DNA of 63,347 nt, counting the filler, from Choristocarpus tenellus KU-1152 (taxonomy: Eukaryota > Protista > Phaeophyceae): NCBI GenBank assembly GCA_964200185.2. It is 12 parts of 12 records of this genome, joined end to end, with 100 filler letters (N's around TTAATTAATTAA, not from the genome) between each part and the next. Parts side by side here need not be neighbours in the genome. Positions count along the whole stretch, not along the records: positions 3,070 to 19,513 come from CAXNAD020000828.1; 11 more parts are not named here. One strand, written 5' to 3'. The notes beneath the pieces were generated by a model. The model was not told the origin of the DNA. It saw only the letters and a program-made list of their open reading frames with translations, and did no database searches. This document shows positions 3,070-19,613 of this stretch, piece by piece; the first letter of the stretch is position 1; the number at the start of each line of letters is the position of its first letter. Both the position numbers and the translations under genes were made by a program.

Positions 3070-6000
3070 GTGCTGTAGGGACGGGTTAATCAGATCTCCT
3101 CCCTCCTGCCAGAGGCCAAGAGCCACCCCCCGGGTAACCCCCCCCCCCCCCCCCCCCCCAGATACTGTGAGCCAAAGGTACGTCTATAGTCATATTTCGA
3201 AATCACAAAGCTCACAGCCCTCAAAGATCGCAACCAAAGAGTATGTATGATGGAGATTATCACGTCCAGGTCACACTTCAGGCGCAACAAATGACACAAG
3301 AGAGACCACAATTTTGCTACACTTGTACCTCTGAAGTTTGTGAAAGCGCTTGGTGCTCAGATTGACCAAGATGACATTCCAGAAGAGTATACAGCATATA
3401 CTATGAACTAAGCTTCGCTTATAACACTACAGAGATCAGGGAAGAGGTCAGAATTTGGAAATTGCTACAACTGCAACCATTCACTCACTGTGCATCCAAC
3501 ATTGTGCCCTTGCCTAATTTTCTTTGCTTCATGGCCAGAGCTTTTTCATCATGCCAAGTGTGCAGTAAGTGGTTTCATGATGAGGGAAATTCAGGCACAG
3601 GAAGCTGAGGAAGTTGAGTGCACAATCCGCACACTTCATAGTCACATCACAGGACTTCAAGTATCTAACAACACGTTTTGGTCAAAGTGAGGAACAAGTA
3701 CTTCTGCAAACTGAGTGGGTAGCGTAGGCATGAATGCTATCTCGTATAGTATGTTGAACCTAAGGTATAAAGCCCGAACTGGACAAGCATGAAACCTCCT
3801 ACATAAACAAAACCGTAAAGTATGGGCAGGATCCCTAGCCTGCACAATAAAGGTGCATGTGGTTCAGGTGATGTATTTCTGAGGATCTCCCTCTGTTTAT
3901 TATGGTCTATCTATTGATTCAATCTCCCGACAAACATGTCACCAAGCACCAAGGTGCTCATTTGACAATGCAATGCCCTGAACACAGACTACTATCGTTT
4001 CATCACCTCATCTTTTCACAAAGATGCACACAACCAGCCAACGCAACAATTCTATAGCACAAAGTTAACACATTTAATACCAACATGGTAAATTTTACGG
4101 ACACAACGATTGTTCTGTATGTTTTGGAATCGAGTGCTATAGGATGAAAATACTCTTCTGTATATTTTCGTGTGGAGTGTTATGGGACAAAAATATAGTA
4201 TAAGCTCAATCTAATGTGGTACATACACTGTGTGTATTGGACAATTGAGGAGGTACAGGATCCACAACATCAGAGCACATAAGTTTACATGGATCACTGT
4301 CTTAATCACACCGCTGAAATAACGATAAATCAAAGAGAGTCCTACTGAACAAAAGAGTCAATGATATTGACTTGTGTAAGATTTTGTTCCCATGGTTGAG
4401 ATACCACCTCAGACATCGGCGTCTTGGCCACATAGATTGAGGAGATACAATAGCAAGTTGATGTCCCCATGAGCACCACCGACATCACAATCCTACATGA
4501 TTACTGTAAGCAGCTCTGTAACGCCATCCATCCTGTCAACCAGCAGTGCAGGCAAACCAGCAACTCCTACCGCCATAGGTCAGTGGAACTGGAGGTCGTC
4601 AAGGGGTTAATTGCTTCCTTCACAACTTATGCCAGATTGGTGTTTGGAGTGCAATGTGCCTGTGACAAACACAAGTCAGTCTCCCATCCACTGCTCGGTT
4701 GTGCACACTAAGAAAGCAACAGCAAAATAAATATATAAATGGTGCCAACAGTAACACACACTGTTTCTAGTGCAACTCGAGCATGCACATAGGGCAGACG
4801 CAGCAAGGGGAACCTTTTTCAAAATAAACAACTGTACTTGCCCTGCAACCAATTATTCAAAGGGAAATTATTCTGTGACCAGATGAAAGTTTTCGGTTTA
4901 ACTGGAAACACAAGTCCTTTGGCTTCGCATGACACAGATAAAAAAAACCCTTTAATCTAAACACTTGATTTGGTGACAGAAAAAACAAGCTGCATGGGCT
5001 CGTAGCACAGTCTATCCTTGGGTATCCTACACTTGCGGTTGCTGTTTTAAATCGTGACATCTGTATGGTAGGACAATGATATCTCACAATCGGGCTTCAA
5101 ATGAACTGGGGAATATGGAGATGGTGCTATTGTCTGTGGGTGATATGATTTCATCCCCAAAGGACCAGTGGTGCTGAGGGGAGTTGTAAAGCTGGCGGTG
5201 CATGATTCCCTAACAGGCCCTCAGGAACTTGGAGTTGTGCAATATTTACACTGTCAACATCAACCCAAATTTGATGTCTACTTTGATGCTCCTGAGCACA
5301 ACTCTCGACTGCAAAAAAAATATGTATAGAAACAGCAAAAGAGTGAGGGTGCAGGTGCCAGTCTGCTTCTATCAGCAAACAAGCAAGCTCAATGGAGGGG
5401 GGGAAACAGTGCTTCAATGGTGCTGGCACAAAAGGAAACCTCTTGCTAGGTACCACTATGATTCCATTTTTTTCATCTACTCCTACACTGTACCTCATGC
5501 TGACCTTTCCAATTTGGAAGCAATCGAGCAATCACTCCTTTTCCCACTTTCTTTCATTTGCTTCAGCCATCCCCACTACTCAGGAGACTTTCTTCGGCAA
5601 TGGTAATCTGGAATCGATCATGTAGAGGTTCTGAAATATCCCGTATGGTTTCTCCTTCTAACCCAGTTACTACCACTCCATCTACATCCTGTAGTAAGAT
5701 GGACTCTAGGGTTGTTCTGTTGCACATGAAAGTTTATTGTTGTGGATACTTTCGAAGCCCAGTTCAATCAGGCGATTATGATAAAAAACAACAACATGCC
5801 AATTCATTGGTTATGTCATAATCCACATAAGCCCTTATACCGCTTACATACTTGCAGTGTTCCATCTGCTCCACGCTATTTGTGTCTTTCTGGTTGTTTT
5901 ACATATCACAAGTCCTGTTGGACTGGACTTCCAGAAATGCCGCATCGACATTGTGCTATAATATGTCCAGCAGTTTGAGGTCCCAAGAGTCAGGATGACC

Positions 6001-8435
6001 TGTACATTTTATATTTTACCCACTGGTATGAAACCGAAACCCTATATTACACCTCTAGCAACCTCTGCCTTGTAAATAGACCATACTGCAACAGACACCA
6101 CGTGTGCCACAAGTACAAGTACGCTAACAGATGTATTGAATAGTCTGAATACAATTACCAACAAGTCAGAGTCACTCTAGGGCGGATATTTACATTTGCC
6201 CACAATGACATCCACAATAACTAATATAGGCTACTGTGAGGGGAGGGTAAAGGATTCAAGCAGGAAATCAGAGGTGGGCCTCAGATACATGAAATGACTC
6301 ATACTAAGATTGAGGTTAAGGGTTAGGGTTCACGTAGACAAAAAATTAAACATTTTACACTGATATAATAACCCGTGATAAACATTGGGGCAATGGAATG
6401 TTTATCCAAGAACTTTGGTAGTATACATTCCTTTGTATCAGGTGAAGTACAAGCGCCTTGCCAAACGGTCAAGTGCCCAGAACCCCCAAGACTTTGAGCC
6501 AATGTATTCTATGGGGTGTGTGGATTTAGGCCCTTTTGAGAATAGGGGCTCATAATTCCTGCCTGACACCGCCATTCCAATACACATATTGCACGTAACC
6601 CTGACCAGAAGGCTGAGGTTGTAGAAGAGGAGACAAACATTTGTCCATGCAAGTGTTAATCACTCTCCAGAGTGCTAGGAATACATGCACAATAAGGCAG
6701 TCACAGGGGCCCCTTTGCACTCAACAACACTCCCGTCCAAGGTACTATGGTTTCCATTGTTTCTGTCTATCCATATGTACACCATGCGCAGACAGTGCTA
6801 GATTCAGGTCCCTTGCCACCCGTCAACTATTGACAGATTGCTACACCACCCAACAATAAAAACATGATGAGGTGGTTCCTACAATGCCTCGCCCTTCTGC
6901 ACGCTCCTTCCACTCACCGTTCAAGATTATCTTCTCCTCTTACCAGGGCCTCAACCACTCGTCGCATGCCTGCATGGGCTGTAGGTTCATCTTCAAGGAG
7001 GAAGTTGGTCAGTGAGTATGAGCTGATGAATTGCGCCGCCTGTGAGGGGGTGAAGGCATGGTGTGACTGGCATGTGAGACTATATGCTACTCATCACATA
7101 TATGCCTAGTACGTACTATAGTCTAGAAGGTGGGTAATGTGTTGGGGGAGGAATGATGGCATTATGGGTGTTGATATCAGTCAGAAAAATAAGACAAAGT
7201 AGTGCATTTCAACCATTTCGACATCATGTATCTCCATTATTCTATAAGTCTTACACAGTACATGACATGTACCAGACTGCAAACATTGCACCTGCAATGT
7301 GCAACACAAAACTGGACCAAAGTTTGACAGAATGTGACAGTACCCAATGAGAACAGTGCGCATCATTATTACCATATAAGATCTTAAGACAATTTCCTAC
7401 TACCTTGGAGGGGAAGAAAGGAGGGTTACACCCCTGAAGAATGATAAATAGCACCACTCAATTATGTGCTTGAAACCAAGTTAGTTATCTATTGCTGACA
7501 GCAGTGGTATTAGATGGAATGGGTGAGTAGCAGCATTGAGACATATATGTCAACAGTTCAACGAAACAAATTAAGCCGATGTCCAGGACCATGTGCCTAG
7601 CCTAAATATTGACACAACCTTACCCAAATGGCCTTCCCTCAAGGGACAACCACTATCCTTGGTCTTCTCCCCCTGTCTTCTTAACCCCTGTTCCTTACCG
7701 TGACCAGGGACTGCCGAGGGTCTCCCAACGCTTGCATGGCCCTGTCCGCCACCTCCCTCTGCAGCCTCAGCAGCCAGTAAAGCTGATTGCTTTGTCGATC
7801 TCCATGAACACTAACACCTTCAACAAATGAAGGACTATTTGAATGAGCATCGGATCTGCACTCAGGGCCTAACCCCCCTTCCCTTTCCTCGGTTGCCATC
7901 ACTGCTTCCACCCCTTCTCCTGCTCTATCTATTGAGTCCATTGGCATCATGGCCCTCACCCCAGCATCAGCTGTGGCTACACCCCCAAGCTCTGTTATTG
8001 AGGCAAAGATATCTGCAAGCGAAAAAGAGCGAGCAATTTCTTTGAGGTGGTCCAGGCTGGTCTGGTGTTGGGTATGAGGATAACCCTCCAGTGCGGCACA
8101 GAGCCCAGCAAGGGTGGCAGGATGCATTATCATCTCTGTTTTAGTTGTTTTGCACTGTGGTCTCATTCTTAACCTCCTTGACCCTTCAGCGGGATTACAT
8201 CCTAGCTCTGTATCCTGGAGGAAGACCAATTCTTGCAAGGCCTTCTGAGCACAAGAACAGACAAATCCTGCTGTCTTTCATACAGGAGTTGTACACAACA
8301 GATGACAAGGATAGAGGCAGGGAGGGTGGTGGTGGTCAGGGGGGAGAATTTCTTGACCATAAGCATACTGCACTAGTTCTGTACCCGGTGAACATACCAG
8401 GCAGGATAGTGGACATTTAGGGTCGATACCACACT

Positions 8436-8690
8436 GAGTCAAAGTATACGAGAGATACCCAGAGTTGCATTTTAAGGATATTGACAAAAATTCACAAAAT
8501 CGTCTTTGTTTACAGATTATCTGGAGGATACTTTCTGATTTGTGTTGGAAACGTTTCAAACAATACAGAAATCAACGTTCTCAAGTCAAACCAAGTGCTT
8601 CACCCATAGAAATATGGGTGAATTGCAAAAGATTGAAAACTGGCTTAAAATGCAAAATGGCCAAAAACTGGGTACCTCTCTTTACTTGGG
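8436..8690 (-). mobile_element. MITE family B copy (~260 bp)
   Basis: Inverted homologue of 31903-32161; GAGTCAAAGTA terminus. Confidence 0.8.
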
Positions 8691-11451
8691 CAAACTGGTG
8701 TGTGATACACCCGTTTGAAGAAGGGGTGGACTTAAGAAGAGGGCAACAGAGTGACAAGCTAAAGTTGTGATGGTGATCTCAGTCACTACCATATCTATAG
8801 TAAGTCTCTGCCCAAGGGAATTTTCAAGTTTTATGGGGTCTATAGCATGCTAGGAACACGTAAGTACATATTGTTCTGTAGTTGTGAAGAATATGTCTCG
8901 TGTGCCCAACTCTCTGCATGGAGGGCACATAGTGCTTGTAGGCAAGACATTGTAGAAATACTAACAACAGCGGTTCTCTATTCAGTTATTACTTTAAGAA
9001 AATACAACAAACGTTGGGAATATTTTGAACCAAATCACTGTTGCAGCCCTGGATGCCTCTATTATAATAGTGATCCACTCTGTGGATACACCCAATACAA
9101 ATAAATGGTCAAAAAAAAATGCAAGTGGAGAAAGTGATAGATTATGATAATAAAATACAGAATGAATCACAACAATGATTTCTGATGGTCTTTTGTTGGA
9201 ATGAGTTTCATTGACGCATATACACTGTTAGCAATACAACTTGGTAAATTAGAAGTCAATGTAACATGTTGTGGAAAGGGGGACTGTGGATATACTGTAG
9301 TTAATGCACAGGCAATGTACTAGCACAGGAAATTTGGTGGAAGTTTACTACATTTACTGGAAACTTCTAGCTCTGAGGTTGTGATAGTAGAGGAGAGGAG
9401 TTGAGTTCCCCTATCTGTTGTTCTCTCTCACTCTTCTTCTGCAAACCAAAAATATCACACCATAAAACAGAAAGGTCATGCCCTCTCCACAACCAGGGAC
9501 TCAGCTCATGTTTCATTACATACCTTGGAAGTTCTTGAAGTACACACTTCAAACTACATTGTGCATGATCACTTTTTCTCAAAATTTTTAACTGGCATCA
9601 CATTGCACAAGTTCAAACACATATCAAGCAATGAACAACACAAGCAGAGTTGAGCGCCTTTTTGAGATCAAACATTCCCTGCAAACTAAAGCCACCCAGT
9701 GAAACTTAGAGCATATCAACACTAATCTCTTCACACTTATATGCACAAGATACACGGTAAAAACTACTCAAGTACTCTGGAATCCGATTTTGCTCAATGC
9801 ACAACCCAGTTTATGCCGCAAATGTTTTCACCATAATGCTTCAATAGAAAATAGAAAAAAAAATCAAAACACACCAATGCTCAACCCCCAATATTGGAAT
9901 ACCATATTTCAGATGAATACATCAACCCCCCCCCCCCCCCCCCCCCCCCACTGAACAACCAAAAAGTATATTATTGATAAAAAGAATCGACACAAAGACC
10001 TCAGAAACAACAATCACCACAACGTTCCAAGAGCAGCATGATTTACACAACACAAAAAGAGCCCGACACCTCTAGGCATACTCACCCTAGCTTGAACTTT
10101 TGCTCCTAGACACAGCCTTTGCAGGCCATCCATCACATGCATGCAGAGACTCACGACTGCCTCCACCTGCAAGGAGACTTCGCCAACCTCACAAACTATG
10201 GAACTGCCACTGGTCCTAGACCCGACACCCTCCCAGACATCCGTCCTGTTTTGGCCTTTCATCCTGTCCACACTTGTCTCCTCCGTCAGCAACACCTCAC
10301 CATCTGCTGGGCTGCTGTTACAGCCTTGGTCAGTTGGTGGGCATTGTAGAAAAAACTGTGGTTGTTGCTGATGTTGTTCACTAGGATAGGACAAGGACAA
10401 CTGCAGAGATGTGGGTGTGCCAGTGTGGAAAAGTGTCCTCATGCCCCCCACCAAGTCTTTAACCACCTCTGACTTGTCTTCCCCTGTTCTCACCAAGATG
10501 AGCTGGGAATGCACATGTTGCGATAGCAGTAATCCTACAAGTGCCAAGGTATCTTCACCCTTCCCCTTCTCCACCCCTCTTTGTCTACCCCCCTCCAAAC
10601 AGTTCCTTGAAAGAGTGGGCGGATGGTCACATGAGTCTGCACCTACCACTACTGTCTCCTTCCCATCAGAAAGACCAGCAGCACCTCTGGGGCACCTCTG
10701 GCTGTAACTCTGGGCAGCCATTCTGCAGTACCCATGGACCACCCAGTCACCATCAGTCCTATCCCATGACATTTGTCTAACCTCTTCCTCAGTTCTGAAT
10801 ATGGTTTGAGCTGTACCTGAACTTTCAGGCTTTTTTCTGAACCCAGTCCCAACCTGATCCTCAGCACTCGTCCTCCTTCCTACTTTCGAACCATTTGCTA
10901 TTGCGGCTTCCATCCTCACCCTGTCCAAGTTGCCCTCCGCTGGGACTTGAGTCCCATCCTCCAATGTTGAACTTTCATCCCATTCCCACCATGACCTAGT
11001 GGTGACTTTGGGCAGTAAGCGGTACACTTCCTCAAGGAAGAGTCGTCTGCCAGGGATGAGGAACGTGCCAACATGATCCCACCATGTTTCCACACATTGT
11101 TGGAGGAAGCATAGGTGGGTTGATATGGATCGTGGAGTTGGGACATACAGCACATAAACATACACACAGGTTCAGACATACAACTGTGCATGCGACAGAC
11201 ATCAAACTAAAAAAAATAGAACTTCTACTCAATAGTTTACTGGTTTGTGGCAAGAGGTGATAAACAATGTCAAAGATCAGTATTTTTTTATTAGCATTAC
11301 AAATACTAAAGGTGAGCCATTACCTGTATCTAAAAATTAACGATATTTCTATTGATTGTAAGCAATCAATAGAACATCTAGTCTTACAAGTTTCGGTAGA
11401 TGAAGACCACAAGACATAAAATCTTAGCTGAAAGGTCTTTAAAATATGATT

Positions 11452-11746
11452 ATTATTCAGTACCTGATCAGATATTGCCCCACGACCAATAAAAAACTCA
11501 ACATCCACTTCTTTTCGTATAAACTTTTAAATGATTTTATCAAGAAGTTTCTTATATTTGTCCTTTTGATCACCCATCCAATAACGTGGAAGATATTCTT
11601 CAACTATTTTCATACCAAATCAGGCATAATATGTACCAAATATATTTTGGAATGAAATCCATTTACAAAATTTAATGCCAGAGGAAAGACTGCTTCAATA
11701 GACTGCTTCACTGACAAATCAACTGGAATCACTATATTTTACACAT
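11452..11746 (-). pseudogene. uspA: Universal stress protein (UspA family), Rickettsiaceae-type; frameshifted and 3'-truncated
   Basis: Restoring two single-base deletions in homopolymers gives MCKNIVIPVDLSVKQSIEAVFPLALNFVNGFHSKIYLVHIMPDFGMKIVEEYLPRYWMGDQKDKYKKLLDKII*KFIRKEVDVEFFIGRGAISDQVLN. This has the Usp N-terminal 'KNILIPVDLS' motif and the 'PDFGMKxxEdYLPxxW...IGRGAvxDxi' pattern I recall from Rickettsia UspA. The C-terminal ADLIII/LG-S part is missing. Confidence 0.85.
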
Positions 11747-11797
11747 AACCACTATCTCTATCCTACTTTATTAATTTAAACCTAGGAAATATTAAAC

Positions 11798-12133
11798 CTA
11801 TTGCAACGTAGGATATGCCATCTTAAATTTAGAAAACTTTACACTAAAACAGTCAAGAAGTTTTTTTAACAGCATAAATTTTCTAGAAACAAAAATTGTC
11901 AGAACTGCCGCCGTATCTTGATCTTTAGTAGCGTCATGGTACTCATACTCTTGTAGAATAGCCTGATAAAAAATAGGATTACTCCTTGAAAGCAAACATA
12001 ACTTATCACTATTAACTGTTACAAAATTTGATTCACATTCATGTTTCATTATATTTACTAGCTTATCAAGTATCAAACGTAAACGTATCAATTGATACAT
12101 AACATTAAAAGGCTCAATTACTATATTAGACAA
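11798..12133 (-). CDS. Bacterial-type hypothetical protein fragment inside the AT-rich island
   Basis: 111 open codons in very AT-rich DNA, directly upstream of uspA on the same strand. The frame extends upstream through stops to about 12220. No family recognised. Confidence 0.35.
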   Translation of the reverse strand: MSNIVIEPFNVMYQLIRLRLILDKLVNIMKHECESNFVTVNSDKLCLLSRSNPIFYQAILQEYEYHDATKDQDTAAVLTIFVSRKFMLLKKLLDCFSVKFSKFKMAYPTLQ

Positions 12134-12249
12134 TCTGAAGTCAAAATTGATCTTTTAGCGGTTTAACAAAAATTATGCGGCATAAAGTCTTGCTACTTGC
12201 ACTTTATACATTAACCTATGATGACTTTTATGTATCTCTATCAAGAGTA

Positions 12250-12494
12250 CCCTCTATGCTGGTGCTGCATTTAGTTATCCAATAATATTTGCAAATTCTT
12301 TACATATTTTTCCAGAAATAAAAGGAACAGCATCTTTAATTATTGTTAATGTTAGAATGTTTGTTATAGGAATACTTATCAAAATAATTAGTGAAATTTA
12401 TATCAGTAGATTATTTTAAGTAGCAATCGTTATTTTTGTTGGTAACATTATTTACATAATATTTACATTCTATCTATCTTCTAAAAAAAAATAG
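12250..12494 (+). pseudogene. 3' fragment of a Bcr/CflA (DHA1) family MFS transporter, bacterial
   Basis: YAGAAFSYPIIFANSLHIFPEIKGTASLIIVNVRMFVIGILIKIISEIYISRLF*VAIVIFVGNIIYIIFTFYLSSKKK*. Contains the 'sLeiFPeikGtAS' TM10-TM11 loop typical of Bcr/CflA, hydrophobic TM11-12 and a basic tail ending at a natural TAG (12492-12494). One internal TAA at 12417-12419. Confidence 0.75.
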
Positions 12495-15400
12495 GAAGGC
12501 AAAGTTGCAGAAGCATAAACAAAACCTAACTAAAAAGTAAAATTAGTTTTTTATACAAAATTCAATTTAACGTAGAATTAGTAACTAATAAATATACTTA
12601 ATAGCACAAATAACTTTAGCTTAATTTCTATAGATATAAATGAGTTTAAGAGGATATATGTTAAATTATTATGATGTTGTGGTAGTTGAGGAGAGGTGGT
12701 CTTGCAGAATCTATAGATTCCCTGGAAATCAAGTACTGTGGTTAAAATAGTGCTATATTTGAGGCTAGAGACAGGCTTGGTGGCAGTGTTGATACTGAAT
12801 TTGTTTACCATGCTTGGTGTCAACCTACCTCTCATACATGGCAACATTTCACGTACGCACCCAGTAATATTATTATTATTTCAATAATTCTTCACAACAG
12901 TCAGAAAGGCCTCAGAATTGTGGTCAAAAGGTAATAAAAGGAAAGCAATAGACCCCACTTGAGAGGAGACAAACACTGCCGAATAAATATATTCTATGTT
13001 CGCTGAAAAAAGAAGGGGAACAAAAATTCCCTCTTGTCCAATCGAAAATCAGAATATGAGTCAGTCACATTTAGCCCGAGAAAACTGTAGTGTATGCCCC
13101 TATTTGCGATTTTCGGGAAACCAAGTTTCGTAAATTTAAAGACATGGCCAAAGCACTTTTTTTTTCTACAAAGTAGTATGTATTATTTGTCCGTAGATAC
13201 AATTCAATGTCACATCTCATGCATTCTATTTGAGGAGTTTATGTTCCTCATCTGTTCTATTCAGATATGTTATCTACTCACGCCATCTCATTCAGGAATA
13301 TTTCTAGCGCAACGACACAAACTGGGTAACTTAATGTCTGGAGCACCGCCAATCATTTATTCAATTTTATAGAGTGCGGGCGGACCTTTATGGTATGAAC
13401 ACAGTAATGATTTTGTACAAAAAAAAAAATGAGATGAAAGCATCCCTTGTACTGACGGGGTTGGTCTGGAGAACAAAACGTTTTGGCAGGGCGAGACCAG
13501 GGCCAAAAAAACTTACACCCTTGTCGGGCCATGGGTTAACTGCTGGTACAGTGTAAGGCCCCTGTTCTTTTCCATCACTCACACAATAATGTTGATTACA
13601 TAAAGAGCCAAATATGTAGGAGCAAGTCATAACTGCCAAAAAAATAGATGTAACTGTCATTGTGTGGATCGTCACCACCTACAAATATTAAAACATATGC
13701 TGGAACGATCAACCCAGAGCCTTTGCATAAATTTGTCACTCAATTTCTTTGCGTTGTAAATGTCTATGCGTGATGTAGAAATCGGCTACCCACCTTACCA
13801 GCTACGTACGTAGCCAGCTACAACACATAGTCTCAACTCAAACGATAATTTCTGGATCATTCTCCATCGCGTGTACATGAACGTGTATGCAAAGAATATG
13901 CACACAGAATGCGCAGGCAGTGCTCTGCTTCTATGCGCTCAAGTAACCTATGCAATATTTAGGAGAGGGGTATTTCAGAAGCTATTCTTCGCTTCAAAAT
14001 AATAACCCCATAAAAATATGATACTACAATACATGTAGTAGAAGTAGTATCCCAATCCTACCCACACCAAAATAAATACTTTGAAGAACTCTGCTAAAAC
14101 TTGATATCACATAATGTATGCCTACGGTTCCTACCCCAAATCCACCTTTCAAAGCTTGACAATAATAAAGGGTTAAGGGTAGGGCTACGGAGATTTGCTA
14201 ATTGTCAAAGACAAGTTTGATGCAGGCAACATACTCTATGGTCAAGTGCATCAATTCAAGGAAAACAATAGGACCACTATCTTTGGGAATAACAAGTCCA
14301 ACCAATATAGCACCATAAAGTACCACAACGTGGTGGTTCTCCGATGTATCCTGACTCTTGAAACAAAAACCTACGCAATGACAGACACTTCTCCAACACA
14401 CACACATACTCACACACACAAGCATACATCACTACCGGTACAGCAGTTGGATGTCCACTTGAGTTCTCACCTCAATATATATTCGTTCATCATATCCTAT
14501 GGTTCACCCCTTTTCACTAAGCACACTCCCTCACCCCCCTAATTAAAAGATGATATAGATCTTCCTCCTCACAAGTTATTGCTACGGGTCAAACATCCCT
14601 CTCATGAAAAGGAGAGAGAGAGACAGGGGATACCTAACATGCCCTGTCTCCTCTAGTGCCTTGGAATCTCTGTATCTAACACGGCTACTGGTCAACAACC
14701 TATACACCACCTCCATCTATGTCAAAAAATATTCCACTCTTGTAGCAGTGCTCTTGGATGTTAGGCCTAATGCAGTGCTCAGCTCACCAAGGCTTGGAAT
14801 GCATCTCCCCCCATTGCTCTGCCTTGACTGCACCGAGCAAATGTTATTGACTGTCCCAATTCAAATTATCACCAAAAGGTTTTGAGATGACTCATTTGCT
14901 ACACACCAAAAAACAAGCAACCTGATGTGCTACAAAGGCGTCCAGAGTCTTGCTTGGTATGTACTCCAGAGCAATACAATAGTGCGAGTCATAAATAATA
15001 ACAATGCTTATCAAATAACATTGACAAACATTAATTTGCATCTTCTTCTCAACATTTTAATATTACTAACATGAAATATAATGTTGTAGGATTGGGGTTA
15101 CGGTTAGGGTTGTGTACTAAAGTTAAAAGCCCACAGCGCCCCAGAAGCATTCCCAAACAAACCAAATAATTTGATCTAATCAACACTGGCAAGTGCTAGA
15201 GATCTGTAATCTCTAACCCCCCTCCCTCCTGGGAACTCATAATACTAACTTACCGCTGATGGATAGTCCTTCCTGGGCCACTCCAGGCAAAACCTCCAAA
15301 AGGAAGGGTAGACTCTCTCACTGCCCCTGCCTTACCTCGCCATGAAGCACACCCTGCATTACCCCCTCCACTCCCCCTGCTTCCATGTCCCCGTTCCATT

Positions 15401-18400
15401 TCACGGTGATCTACGTGCATGGCCTCAGAAATAAGACAACCCAGCCAGGGGTGCTGGTGAAGGAGTCCCTTTTGGTGGCAAAGGGGGTATAGGTACATGA
15501 GATGATACAGGCATTATTATGTGTGTACATTTGTCATGCACAAACAAATGTGACTCAAAAGGGTATATCTTTATTTATCAACTCTCGCTAACCTCCAACA
15601 TCCATTCCCCCCTCTCCCCACCCCAGTCTTTTCACTGGATCTCCTCATCCTTGTTTGAAAGAGCTAAAGTCAGTAGTTTCTTATCTCAGCCTACAGAAGC
15701 TGGTGTTGGTTGAGCCATCACAAAAAAAAAATGTATGCGAGGTCATACACACCCTTTTGGTTTCCACTTTCTCTTTCTTGAACAACAAAGCATATCATGC
15801 ACCTCAGAGAGTGAGAGAATATTGATGGGACAACATCCATCGAAAAACAAAAAAGGGGGTTACCCCGCCTCCTCCCAATAGAATCTTGAACAGCAGTCAC
15901 AGATTAAGCTGCTCAACCTTGGTCTCAAGGTAATGGCCTAAACAATGAGGAACATACATTATAGCCTTAAAGCAAATTTTGAAAAGATCAAGAAGACTGG
16001 GATATCACTACCCCATTGGCTTAACATGACACACACAGACTGACTATATTTGTGGATATGTTGGTTCTCATGCATGTCCACTACTTCTTTACTATTGAAA
16101 CGTTCTTGGACACATGTTAATCATTAGAACATTGCGGAGCATACATCATAGCATTAGGGCCAAAATATGAAACAATTGAAGGGGATTGAGATATCACAGA
16201 GACGTTAAGGTATCCAATTGACCCTGTTAGACACGCAACCTACTTCTCTTGGTTGCATTGTTGTGTCCATGCATGTCCCCCACTCTCTCAGTCTAGAAGC
16301 CTTGCCCCTGAATGTACAACATGCTCAAAACATAAACAAGAAAAAAAAACTTGGAGGCACTATGCAATCAACATAATTCAAGCATTGTATATAATATTCT
16401 TTATTCAAGTAAAACTAGGATGTTGTAACATAAAGTTACTAATAAATAAAATAAGAACATAATATACTCAGGAAAAATTCATTAGGAAAAAACAAAACAT
16501 AAAACTTACGACCATTTCCTCGTACATAAATATCCCCATTGCATCAAACAAAGGTAGAAGTCCAGTCTTGATTTTGAAATCAACGGGGGAGGCTAAGCTC
16601 AGCCCATAGCAAACCCCAACACGTAAGGTCACAAAGGAGGGGTAAGGTTGATATTGATTTTTGTATGACTCACCAGAAGTTCACTATATATGTATGACCT
16701 TGAATGTATTTTGCGGTTGGGGGAATCACTGTTTTTATTTGGGGGGCGCAACTTGTAGGCACATGACTCTAGAGACCAAAAAAAATGTTGTCCCTGGTCT
16801 ATGGGAAATGACACAGTAAAATAATGCCTTTTGTATATGCCATTTCCCACAGTCCCTTGCTGGGTAGCAGGGTAGCTGTGACTTTTCTCACGCCGTCAAT
16901 TGCACCACTATGACGGTCTCTTCAAATGTTGAGAACACCTCAACCTAGGTTAATGGGGCATGGCATATATACTCCAAGTGTATGTGTGTGCCATACCTCA
17001 CTGACCCAAGCATCATACAGGGGGGTTTGATTTTGCTTGCACCTAGCCCTTGTTGATATTTGGCTTCCTTTGGACTTTGCACCCTCAACAACCAATGTCC
17101 GTCTGTAGTTTGCACTGTTTGTCACTCTCATTGTTCCCAATGCAATCATGTCTGTCTCCAACAACGACAATGTGGAAATTTGAGGCAATTGCGCCAACTA
17201 AAACTAGTGTTGGCGCCTTGTTCCTGTGACTCGCAGTGGACAACAGAAGGGTGCCTGTCAAGGTCTACGTGGGCGCATTATTATCCATGCCGCTTGGTAG
17301 GAGTCAATGTCCAATGACCCACTGACGGAGTGAAAAGAACGTATGACAACTTTCTTGCCCACCTCCAACATCACAATGGGCGACAGGAGGATGTGGAACC
17401 CAATACCACCGTGAGAGGACGAAGTTACTTGGATTGGACTCGGGTGATGCACCACAACAGACTAGGATGTGGTTAGAGCTAGGGACATACTCCCTCACCT
17501 ACACACAGCTGTGCACAACACTCTCTTGCAAAGGAACATCTACCTCACTGTCTTCATGCTGGGAACGGCAGCACAGGTGTTCAATATGAATGTGGTAGTA
17601 AGGGGTTGCCAATGATCTGTAACCGAATATGTCGAACTGTATTATAACAGCAATATTTCAAAATGACATCCTTTTATACACCCATTGATACCAACATCAC
17701 CTGGCACATTTGCTTCTTCAATCAGGCAATCTCAGCCACCTAAATGTGGACACATGGAGCTCAGGGTCATTTGGACACATTAAACTTCTACTTCTGCATC
17801 CACCTCAAACCACACCTAACACCACCTTCCGCACTTCTAGATTGTAAGATATGCATGGTGAATCGAAAAATCAAGGTTGAACTGGACTCATCAGGAAAAT
17901 AGACTAATGAACAAGGAGAAGGATCGAGAACAGATCTGATGCAGAAGCCTATGCAGGCTGTTGAGTCCAGGCAGATTGGGAAAGGATCAAGAATGTGTCT
18001 GACACAGATAAGGCACAAGTCCACTTAGTGAACACCACCCATAAGAGGCATACCAATAGGTTTCAGTGGAGAAAAAACCCAAGTATCACGGAAATATGAC
18101 CCAGAAACCCCTGGTACATGTAGGTGTGGGTAAAGCAAGGAACACGTTTGGGTTTTAAAAGAGCTTTTTCTGCCTCATCTATTAGAGACTGTGTTATGTC
18201 TGTGCTGGGTGTTAGCCTACCAAGGATCCTACTAAAGACAACACCTAATATTTTGCTCAAGACGAGCCTACCAATGTTACTACACCGCAAACATTGCAAA
18301 GGTGGTAACAAGAACTATCCTCCGTTTTGCAAGAGAATTTAATGCACGCAGATAAAATCCATTGGTGCATGGACTCACTCAGATTGCGGAAATGCTCGTG

Positions 18401-19613
18401 ACCATCACCTTACATATATAAGACTTAAAGGGTGGGAAAAGGGGTTACAAACGTCACATGTTGACATGTCCAAGATGTGAGAGCTCTTGCAACAAGCTCA
18501 TTACGATTAGAAAATGGCTTGCCAGTCCTTGGGGTGCAAAAGGAAGGACACAATTATAGACACAAGGGTTCATTCCCATGTCAGACTGGAAAAGGTTTAA
18601 TCACATTGCGATAGCTATGCACTCACAGCCTTTCCCATAAGGCAACTTTGTTATTATCAATTCGGCAGCATTGATGGATGACATAACAAGGAGGTGGAGG
18701 GACTACGTAGAGTGAATGACAATGCATCCTGTAAAGAAATCATATTTGATCAAGGACAAGAGCATGTAGGGGGGACAGGGAGGGGAAGAATAGATGGAGT
18801 CATTCCTCTCATGTTCCCAAAGAGAAAACAAGATGTACAACAAGAACATGCCCCTCTTCAATAGCAGACATAACAAAAAAGGGAGGCATGCAACGCACCA
18901 ATGTCCTGGCCGGAAAGCAGACTCCCCCCATAATAAGTTCATGACTAATGGCCTTACCACCATGTGCCTCTCAATGCTATTTCCATATGGTAAAGCAGAT
19001 CCCACCAGTGCTGACAGGGGGAGAAAAATGTTCCCAGGTGGAAATGCCCAGCACTATTGCAGTAGGAAGATGTGGACAACAAACACCATTCTGCTAGTTA
19101 CTCAAGGTTCGTGCGCTACGCACAATATATCCTCAAGTGTCATCACTTCTTGACGCCTATGTCTAGCACTTCCACGTACGTGCACCTTAATATTGACCCT
19201 AATTCAGCTTGTCAGGTCAACAAAGGGCCAAGAAACTTGCCAGCTTCAAGTGTGTCATTGATGGACCACAGGGTCGAAAGATACCTTGACATGACTGCAG
19301 TTCAGTTTTGTTAAAGAAGCTGCGGTTTCCAGGACTCGAGCATAAAAATTTCATTGATCATTTCCTTGGTAGGATGGAGAGAAGGAGCAAAAGGGGCAAG
19401 CTCATCCACCAGAGCTGGGCAACCTTGCCAACAAACACTTGTTGTATTCTATCTCGATCATCAACACATTAGGCTCAAAGTATCTGGGAGGGGGTGGCGG
19501 CTGTCCATTTGGGNNNNNNNNNNNNNNNNNNNNNNNNNNNNNNNNNNNNNNNNNNNNTTAATTAATTAANNNNNNNNNNNNNNNNNNNNNNNNNNNNNNN
19601 NNNNNNNNNNNNN

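Follow-up and report, generated by a model that had tools for sequence, protein, structure and literature searches.

We analysed a 16,444-nt contig (C828, CAXNAD020000828.1) from the 164-Mb genome assembly of the brown alga Choristocarpus tenellus KU-1152 (G000, GCA_964200185.2). The contig occupies positions 3070-19513 of the window, that is, of the whole 63,347-nt stretch of joined contig parts; coordinates given here without a contig name count along the window. The contig carries a very AT-rich island of about 1.5 kb, with three broken genes of bacterial type: a universal stress protein (Usp) gene and a TAXI-family solute-binding protein gene on the minus strand, and the 3' end of a Bcr/CflA-type major facilitator superfamily (MFS) gene on the plus strand. 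All three gene pieces had their best matches in Rickettsiaceae. The original prediction described bacterial gene pieces in both orientations at this place, and the following features were recognized (coordinates, strand, description):

11202-12675, no strand: whole Rickettsiaceae-derived island, delimited by G + C (GC) profile, Markov log-likelihood ratio and tetranucleotides; inside a host intron
11202-11319, minus: AT-rich tail 3' of the Usp stop codon; 30% GC, presumed donor intergenic DNA
11320-11747, minus: uspA-type (UspF/G-like) universal stress protein pseudogene, ATG to stop, broken
11748-11797, minus: TAXI-Usp intergenic spacer, with an ATAGAGA..ATG context common to Rickettsiaceae (DNA alignment)
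11798-12169, minus: fragment of a TAXI-family TRAP solute-binding protein gene (Pfam NMT1_3), from phmmer and an ortholog hidden Markov model (HMM)
12170-12236, strand not applicable: head-to-head junction zone of two donor pieces, which lie on opposite strands and are both 5'-truncated
12237-12494, plus: last part of a gene for a Bcr/CflA-type MFS efflux transporter (3' end, about residues 303-398), interrupted in frame by a stop at 12417-12419
12495-12675, plus: very AT-rich tail 3' of the MFS stop codon; 21.5% GC, no match to donors

The island differs sharply in composition from its surroundings. Its GC content is 27.8% (11200-12675), against 44.4% in the left and 42.6% in the right flank. 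Nineteen other sampled contigs of the same assembly ranged from 40 to 46.5%, with 32.4% as the minimum for a 1-kb window. In a third-order Markov likelihood-ratio scan, trained on the sampled host contigs versus Rickettsiaceae loci, the maximal-scoring segment was 11202-12675, with 84.3 nats; the runner-up segment in the contig reached 11. The sampled host contigs scored 5-14, the sole exception being another rickettsial patch, on contig C10. The tetranucleotide frequencies of the island correlated with those of Rickettsiaceae at r = 0.956 and with those of the host at r = 0.541, while the flanks, like any host contig, gave r = 0.94-0.95 to the host. These bounds agree closely with the sharply limited AT-rich island predicted at 11200-12675, and the junctions are, as had also been stated, free of N and gaps.

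A BLAST-type search of the assembly found the island once. A BLAST search against plasmids and an Rfam search with the whole contig gave no match, and no direct or inverted repeats were found flanking the island. Transposon-like carriage was rejected, because there were neither terminal inverted repeats nor target-site duplications. An origin as nuclear mitochondrial or plastid DNA (NUMT or NUPT) was rejected as well, because the island has no match elsewhere in the assembly. This includes the plastid and mitochondrial contigs, where best matches would have spoken for an organellar source.

Gene remnants in the island

The Usp stretch was compared by tblastn with Usp of Rickettsiaceae (summed E = 1e-32). 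The amino acid (aa) identity was 75-85% for residues 4-43 and 55-65% for residues 44-97. The best nucleotide match was a Rickettsiaceae locus (L047), with 76% identity over 301 nt. Three lesions interrupt the reading frame: one nucleotide is deleted from an A-run behind codon 3 and another near 11619, and an A-to-T change produces an in-frame TAA at 11527-11529. The 3' third is strongly diverged and shortened. Of the truncated and broken uspA first described, the two 1-nt deletions and the TAA bear out the breakage; truncation does not hold, as the stretch is present from start codon to stop codon.

Six stop-free pieces of the island, searched alone, had no significant Pfam or NCBIfam match. 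The homology is shown via intact orthologs, because the island pieces are too short and too decayed for these profiles. Usp orthologs from Rickettsiaceae carry PF00582 (Usp) in their precomputed annotation, and an intact one matched NCBIfam UspF with E 2.6e-19, at a score below the cut-off (69.8 vs 166 bits). The Usp stretch is a pseudogene of the UspA superfamily and encodes no member protein.

Directly upstream of Usp and on the same strand, an open reading frame (ORF) at 11798-12133 had been reported as unknown. The ORF is real, and it belongs to a TAXI solute-binding gene fragment in conserved synteny with uspA. Its 111-aa product gave no match in a word-indexed protein search and, alone, no Pfam or NCBIfam match; an exhaustive phmmer search was needed to find its relatives. 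Against 1.84 billion proteins, phmmer returned five, the best being P0001 (E 7.6e-10, 44% identity). Three of the five carry NMT1_3. One of the five, P0003, is a protein of a "Rickettsiaceae bacterium" metagenome-assembled genome (MAG), and P0002 is among the others. An HMM built from Rickettsiaceae orthologs matched with profile positions 202-294 at 11795-12064 (independent E-value (iE) 3.8e-20) and weakly with positions 78-99 at 12104-12169 (iE 0.0026). Accordingly, the first ~77 codons of the gene are missing and ~100 more have been lost internally; about 35% of the gene remains. It also has a stop near 12155. Intact TAXI orthologs pass TIGR02122 (142 vs a cut-off of 84 bits) and PF16868 (NMT1_3).

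The plus-strand piece was confirmed as the 3' end of a Bcr/CflA MFS gene. It shares 43% identity over 81 residues (~303-383) with ORFs of ~400 aa in five Rickettsiaceae genomes, at E values of 3.6e-18 locally and ~1e-11 for single genomes, and its nucleotide identity is 77-80% over 12259-12352. Two of the matched ORFs were scored against TIGR00710 (cut-off 200.9): one passes with 202.4, the other lies just under with 190.2, and both pass PF07690. The island piece itself holds only the last ~95 codons with one in-frame stop, and no full-length protein with 12 transmembrane segments, and thus does not qualify as a Bcr/CflA member. Matches to it were found in 38 of 130 Rickettsiaceae species genomes and in 10 of 401 evenly sampled Alphaproteobacteria, the genomes of all ten being 1.2-1.9 Mb. 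A reading of 12205-12318 as the antisense 3' end of an SDF symporter gene (weak tblastx) was rejected, as the plus-strand Bcr reading scores far better. An MFS gene 3 kb from Usp in locus L028 was rejected as the source of the MFS piece.

Synteny and phylogeny of the donor

In almost all Rickettsiaceae loci examined, genes for an SDF symporter, TAXI and Usp follow each other in this order on one strand, with short spacers. The TAXI-Usp order with a short spacer is seen, for example, in loci L028, L029 and L033, and the island keeps both the order and the spacer motif before the Usp ATG. In relatives, bcr lies far from this region, ~190 kb away in a complete chromosome (G004) and ~163 kb away in another genome (G003). 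Therefore, the island consists of two unlinked donor pieces joined head to head. Both are 5'-truncated, and they are joined within 12170-12236, where no significant match was found on either strand. The mosaic structure proposed earlier is borne out, the counterparts of the two donor pieces being 160-190 kb apart in related complete or near-complete genomes. Neither blastn nor tblastx matched the tail at 11202-11319 to any of 60+ Rickettsiaceae loci. The RDD gene, which comes next after bcr in relatives, was not detectable in the tail at 12495-12675. A weak Usp-like match at 12676-12741 (E 0.05-0.1), just outside the island, was taken as chance.

A search of 185,579 species genomes with a Usp profile led to 25 loci, all 25 from Rickettsiaceae or Rickettsiales, including Candidatus Megaera (Megaira) venefica. 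At the DNA level, matches were present in 57 of the 130 Rickettsiaceae species genomes, with a maximum of 76% identity. A UspA phylogeny was among the checks named in the original prediction. When Usp and the C-terminal part of TAXI were concatenated for a tree (44 rows, about 240 aligned residues), the island fell within a 31-row clade together with Ca. Megaera venefica and aquatic MAGs (Shimodaira-Hasegawa-like approximate likelihood ratio test, SH-aLRT, 95). It stood apart from a ten-row Rickettsiaceae clade of mostly complete genomes. The best nucleotide identities were also to the Megaira-containing clade. Forcing the island into the other main clade made the tree 28 log-likelihood units worse; the approximately unbiased (AU) test gave p = 0.048, a marginal value for a group chosen post hoc from the tree. 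Together, these results support as donor a member of the Rickettsiaceae, as originally proposed, from the clade containing Ca. Megaera (Megaira) venefica.

The terminal branch of the island is very long, with 0.99 changes per site versus a median of 0.083. At second codon positions, the distance from the island to the Megaira group was 0.09-0.14, and distances among the Megaira-clade bacteria compared were mostly 0.01-0.07, with a maximum of ~0.10. The island would thus carry a surplus of ~6-8% second-position substitutions, which fits relaxed constraint.

Host intron and continuity with host DNA

The host is a stramenopile, as had been stated, and more precisely the expected brown alga. The assembly includes a plastid contig with an inverted repeat and cbbX and a mitochondrial contig with a 5S rRNA of the permuted family, and the plastid CbbX and mitochondrial Nad7 proteins agree exactly with records of Choristocarpus tenellus. 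For read evidence, Logan contigs from three public runs (X1, X2 and X3; one organism, one study) were compared with positions 9700-14200. In X1, a single contig of 9561 nt spans 9960-14200 with two differences and bridges both junctions. The left junction is also bridged in X2, by a contig at 11115-12171, and in X3, by a contig at 11140-11290. The X2 depths, available as contig means only, were 5-7 for the island and 6.5-8.9 for the flanks. Independent contigs thus agree with the predicted integration into an algal nuclear contig, at the left junction in three runs and at both junctions in one.

Further, X3 contained a contig of 1903 nt and depth 95 that spans 10086-11047 and whose ends continue at 8245-8274 and 15255-15284. 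It joins 8274|10086-11046|15254, one ambiguous base at 11047|15255 leading to canonical sites. Since the skipped stretches show GT-AG splicing, the flanks belong to an expressed minus-strand host gene, and the island lies inside its intron. The exon and intron sequence that had been read from the flanks is thereby recovered in a spliced contig, from which we infer that X3 is an RNA library. The host features are:

8275-10085, minus: neighbouring host intron, GTGAGT...AAG; an X3 contig has a loose end at 8245-8274
10086-11046, minus: host exon of 961 nt with a 320-codon open frame, expressed (X3 contig; ORF at 10014-11165)
11047-15253, minus: host intron of 4.2 kb containing the island, GTAAGT...CAG (CT..AC on the plus strand)

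The host exons at 10086-11046 and 7684-8274 (minus strand), searched singly, had no Pfam match and no homologue among 5.8 billion clustered proteins in the length range searched. The strongly expressed and spliced gene around the island may be lineage-specific, or it may be a non-coding RNA whose open frame arose by chance. Each flank occurs once in the assembly, and a search of the assembly with both of them found no haplotig with an empty site. Short dispersed repeats were observed in the right flank at 12884-12940 and 13027-13084, shared at 81-82% with contigs C425 and C7438. The X1 and X2 contigs branch in these repeats, with loose ends at 12880, 12919 and 12951.

The continuity data bear on the possibility of an assembly chimera, in which reads of a live Megaira-type symbiont or of a contaminant were mis-joined to an algal contig. 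In its favour, bacteria of the Megaira group were recovered in brown-alga genome projects (PMC10132079; preprint 10.64898/2026.03.27.714854). A mis-join would also agree with a bridge over the right junction in one run only, and with the patch on C10, which is 97% identical to an extant MAG. Against it, a second assembler (Logan) reproduces both junctions in X1 and the left one in X2 and X3, at host-like depth by contig means. In addition, the sequences on either side of the island belong to one intron, which is removed from a spliced transcript. Its genes are broken and truncated, with at most 76% identity to any of the 130 Rickettsiaceae species genomes, and the assembly holds no intact copy. 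On this evidence, we regard a chimera as very improbable.

Coverage by X3 contigs was uneven within the intron. Positions 11140-11894 (Usp and the start of TAXI) had a depth of 4-13, positions 11965-14100 a depth of 0, and other intron parts about 3. This could reflect precursor RNA, a cryptic transcript or uneven sampling. The difference in depth is also the observation that favours a co-option of the island by the host, as an intronic promoter, an alternative exon, a polyadenylation site or a non-coding RNA. However, this coverage amounts to 4-14% of that of the exon and could come from unspliced precursor; no splice joint in the X3 contigs involves the island, the sole surviving open frame is the 111-codon remnant of a truncated gene, and the Rfam search was negative. 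Co-option therefore appears extremely unlikely.

Further fragments, origin of the island and known systems

The assembly was also searched with the intact Rickettsiaceae genes of the two donor regions. Neither an intact nor a second copy turned up for the island, Usp, TAXI, SDF or Bcr, only fragments. A search for bacterial 16S in the assembly gave nothing but the organellar genes (plastid and mitochondrial) and a copy of the mitochondrial one, besides one weak match of 57 bits on C3948. Judged by their matches, short, stop-ridden Rickettsiaceae fragments are present on at least six other contigs:

C360:14942-15202: Bcr fragment, residues 10-96, 74% aa identity, one TAG
C6805:2328-2537: SDF fragment, residues 281-350, 87% aa identity, no stops
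C2390:8941-9093: SDF fragment, residues 2-51, 56% aa identity, one TAA
C2688:5992-6303: BamA fragment, residues 434-536, 65% aa identity, TGA and TAG
C9353:4407-4618: CutA1-region DNA, 76% nucleotide identity
C11894:1649-1867: further short Rickettsiaceae fragment
C4425:8515-8619, C1642, C20054, C8225, C9596, C2658 and C362: DDE transposase pieces, 23-84 of 307 residues, 35-78% aa identity, several with stops

The bcr, SDF symporter, bamA and cutA1 fragments are 150-310 nt long, with 56-87% aa or 72-84% nucleotide identity, and no donor neighbour genes were found on the contigs that carry them. The transposase pieces derive from a bacterial insertion sequence (Pfam DDE_Tnp_1_3), related to one in the Rickettsiaceae genome G004. 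Matches to the transposase DNA with 79-95% identity were also found on C13, C3999, C538, C21771 and C20833. Several of the pieces are at contig ends and none is intact.

On the 49-kb contig C10, which alone among the sampled host contigs had a high likelihood-ratio score, there is a patch of 27.9% GC at 1665-2245 (L007). Its positions 1992-2197 (206 nt) are 97% identical to the MAG of G063 (JALZUG01, isolate g1_MAG_00005), 89% to G003 and 82% to G004. The 85 nt next to them (1908-1992) correspond to a second locus in these Rickettsiaceae genomes, 158 kb off in the complete G004. The patch is again a two-piece mosaic, and a much younger one than the island in the window. Its 83-codon open frame had no Pfam match. 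Two weaker AT-rich host patches, used as controls, had no match in Rickettsiaceae genomes.

The very different identities of the fragments (56-97%) suggest a long or repeated association. Tentatively, and with somewhat less than even confidence, we consider that the nuclear genome may hold Megaira-group fragments in numbers from tens to thousands, left by two or more waves of transfer, the island (at most 76%) being old and the C10 patch (97%) recent. If true, the scale would be comparable to that of the large Wolbachia-to-insect transfers, in a brown alga, and the genome-wide record could serve to date and follow the association between Rickettsiaceae and a brown-algal lineage that diverged early.

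Two further observations concern organelle-related sequences. A stretch of 369 nt on a separate 4.6-kb contig with nuclear-like GC (C13979:642-1009, L005) is 97.3% identical to the mitochondrial small subunit rRNA and is probably a NUMT or a mitochondrial variant. On the plastid contig, beside the 16S gene (C1:41043-45538, L002), a 1-kb window has 13.9% GC, with a 176-codon ORF that is asparagine/lysine-rich and TPR-like.

In our view, the island is very probably a non-functional, neutral fossil of an endosymbiont-to-nucleus transfer: fragmented Megaira-group DNA from a resident of the algal cell that was concatenated and inserted by ligation at an intronic break, to decay from then on. The donor, an obligately intracellular member of the Rickettsiaceae from the 'Candidatus Megaira/Megaera' group, would have lived inside cells of the Choristocarpus tenellus lineage, and its DNA would have been set free, most likely through lysis. 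Two stretches from unlinked parts of its chromosome, [TAXI'-uspA] and ['bcr 3' end], would have become fused head to head and, most likely by end joining, captured at a double-strand break within an intron of a nuclear gene. Subsequent neutral drift would have brought frameshifts, stops, deletions and extra substitutions, while the AT-rich oligonucleotide signature of the donor was kept.

An alternative is a genuine integration without an infection of the algal lineage, the DNA having come from an infected epiphyte or parasite, as free DNA or by a viral vector, or having been pseudogenised already in the donor. The genomes of Rickettsiales contain pseudogenes, and brown-algal genomes are known to take up giant-virus DNA (PMC11890097). 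Nevertheless, no viral genes were seen beside the island, TAXI-Usp is intact in almost all Rickettsiaceae loci examined, and the genome contains several more dispersed fragments, from donor loci that are not linked, a pattern that a resident bacterium would be expected to leave. As Rickettsiaceae live strictly inside cells and brown algae do not feed by phagocytosis, residence in the algal cell is the simplest source of DNA accessible to the nucleus. We thus consider such an indirect or pre-broken origin unlikely.

Several points weigh against a transfer from a resident Megaira-group symbiont as proposed here. The very long branch and the short alignment weaken the placement within the Megaira group, and the tails at 11202-11319 and 12495-12675 are without any match. 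Some of the lesions may be older than the transfer, since pseudogenes are present in Rickettsiales genomes. The assembly was possibly decontaminated, and therefore the lack of a symbiont genome in it does not equal a symbiont-free culture. The read evidence consists of Logan contigs and not of raw reads, the three runs come from one study, and X1 is possibly the source data of the assembly. The right junction is bridged by X1 only, the X2 contigs ending at 12674 and resuming at 12691, and the spliced contig is the single indication that X3 is RNA.

Our literature search found nothing that combines Choristocarpus and Rickettsia in a relevant way. The Phaeoexplorer paper, which covers C. tenellus, does not mention "Rickettsi-", and its screen for horizontal gene transfer (HGT) excludes singletons and pseudogenes. 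Gene-based HGT screens with such exclusions, as in the Phaeoexplorer pipeline, miss fragments of the kind described here. Composition-based decontamination would either drop such host contigs or leave bacterial-looking fragments. The island is apparently an endosymbiont-to-nucleus insert of a known kind, unreported so far for brown algae.

The closest counterpart is a ~9-kb rickettsial insert (16S, murB, ddlB, ftsQ) in the nuclear DNA of Volvox carteri, published in 2015 and read by its authors as a trace of past endosymbiosis (PMC4324946). Both cases have Megaira-related Rickettsiaceae DNA in an algal nuclear genome without the bacterium, with truncated and rearranged genes and partly kept donor synteny. 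The Volvox insert, however, has several intact ORFs and 88-92% nucleotide identity to a known endosymbiont, whereas the island of Choristocarpus is 1.5 kb long, with all genes broken and at most 76% identity, and lies in an intron of an expressed gene of a stramenopile host.

Nuclear Wolbachia transfers (nuwts) in arthropods and nematodes were reportedly described by Dunning Hotopp et al. in 2007. They also have a Rickettsiales donor, range from <1 kb to whole genomes, and are mostly pseudogenised, often mosaic and in many cases intronic. The donor family and the host kingdom are different, and the germline route is obvious in nuwts; any cell of a filamentous alga can potentially act as germline. 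With NUMTs and NUPTs, the island shares the mosaic concatenation of unlinked pieces, the neutral decay and, as proposed, the capture of fragmented DNA at double-strand breaks by end joining, but its donor is no organelle.

In brown-alga sequencing projects, Megaira-group Rickettsiaceae have so far appeared only as co-assembled bacterial bins. They are described as bacterial genomes, from data of Nemacystus decipiens (PMC10132079) and of Ectocarpus sp. (preprint 10.64898/2026.03.27.714854), and the available text of the two reports mentions no nuclear integration. Like Phycorickettsia in eustigmatophytes, these genomes place this group of bacteria in the broad group of hosts to which C. tenellus belongs, so that an earlier infection of the alga is plausible. 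They are bacterial genomes beside a host genome, whereas in Choristocarpus decayed DNA lies inside the host genome. Such a decayed intronic insert would be direct genomic evidence of a bacterium that shared the cell with the germline of an early-diverging brown alga.

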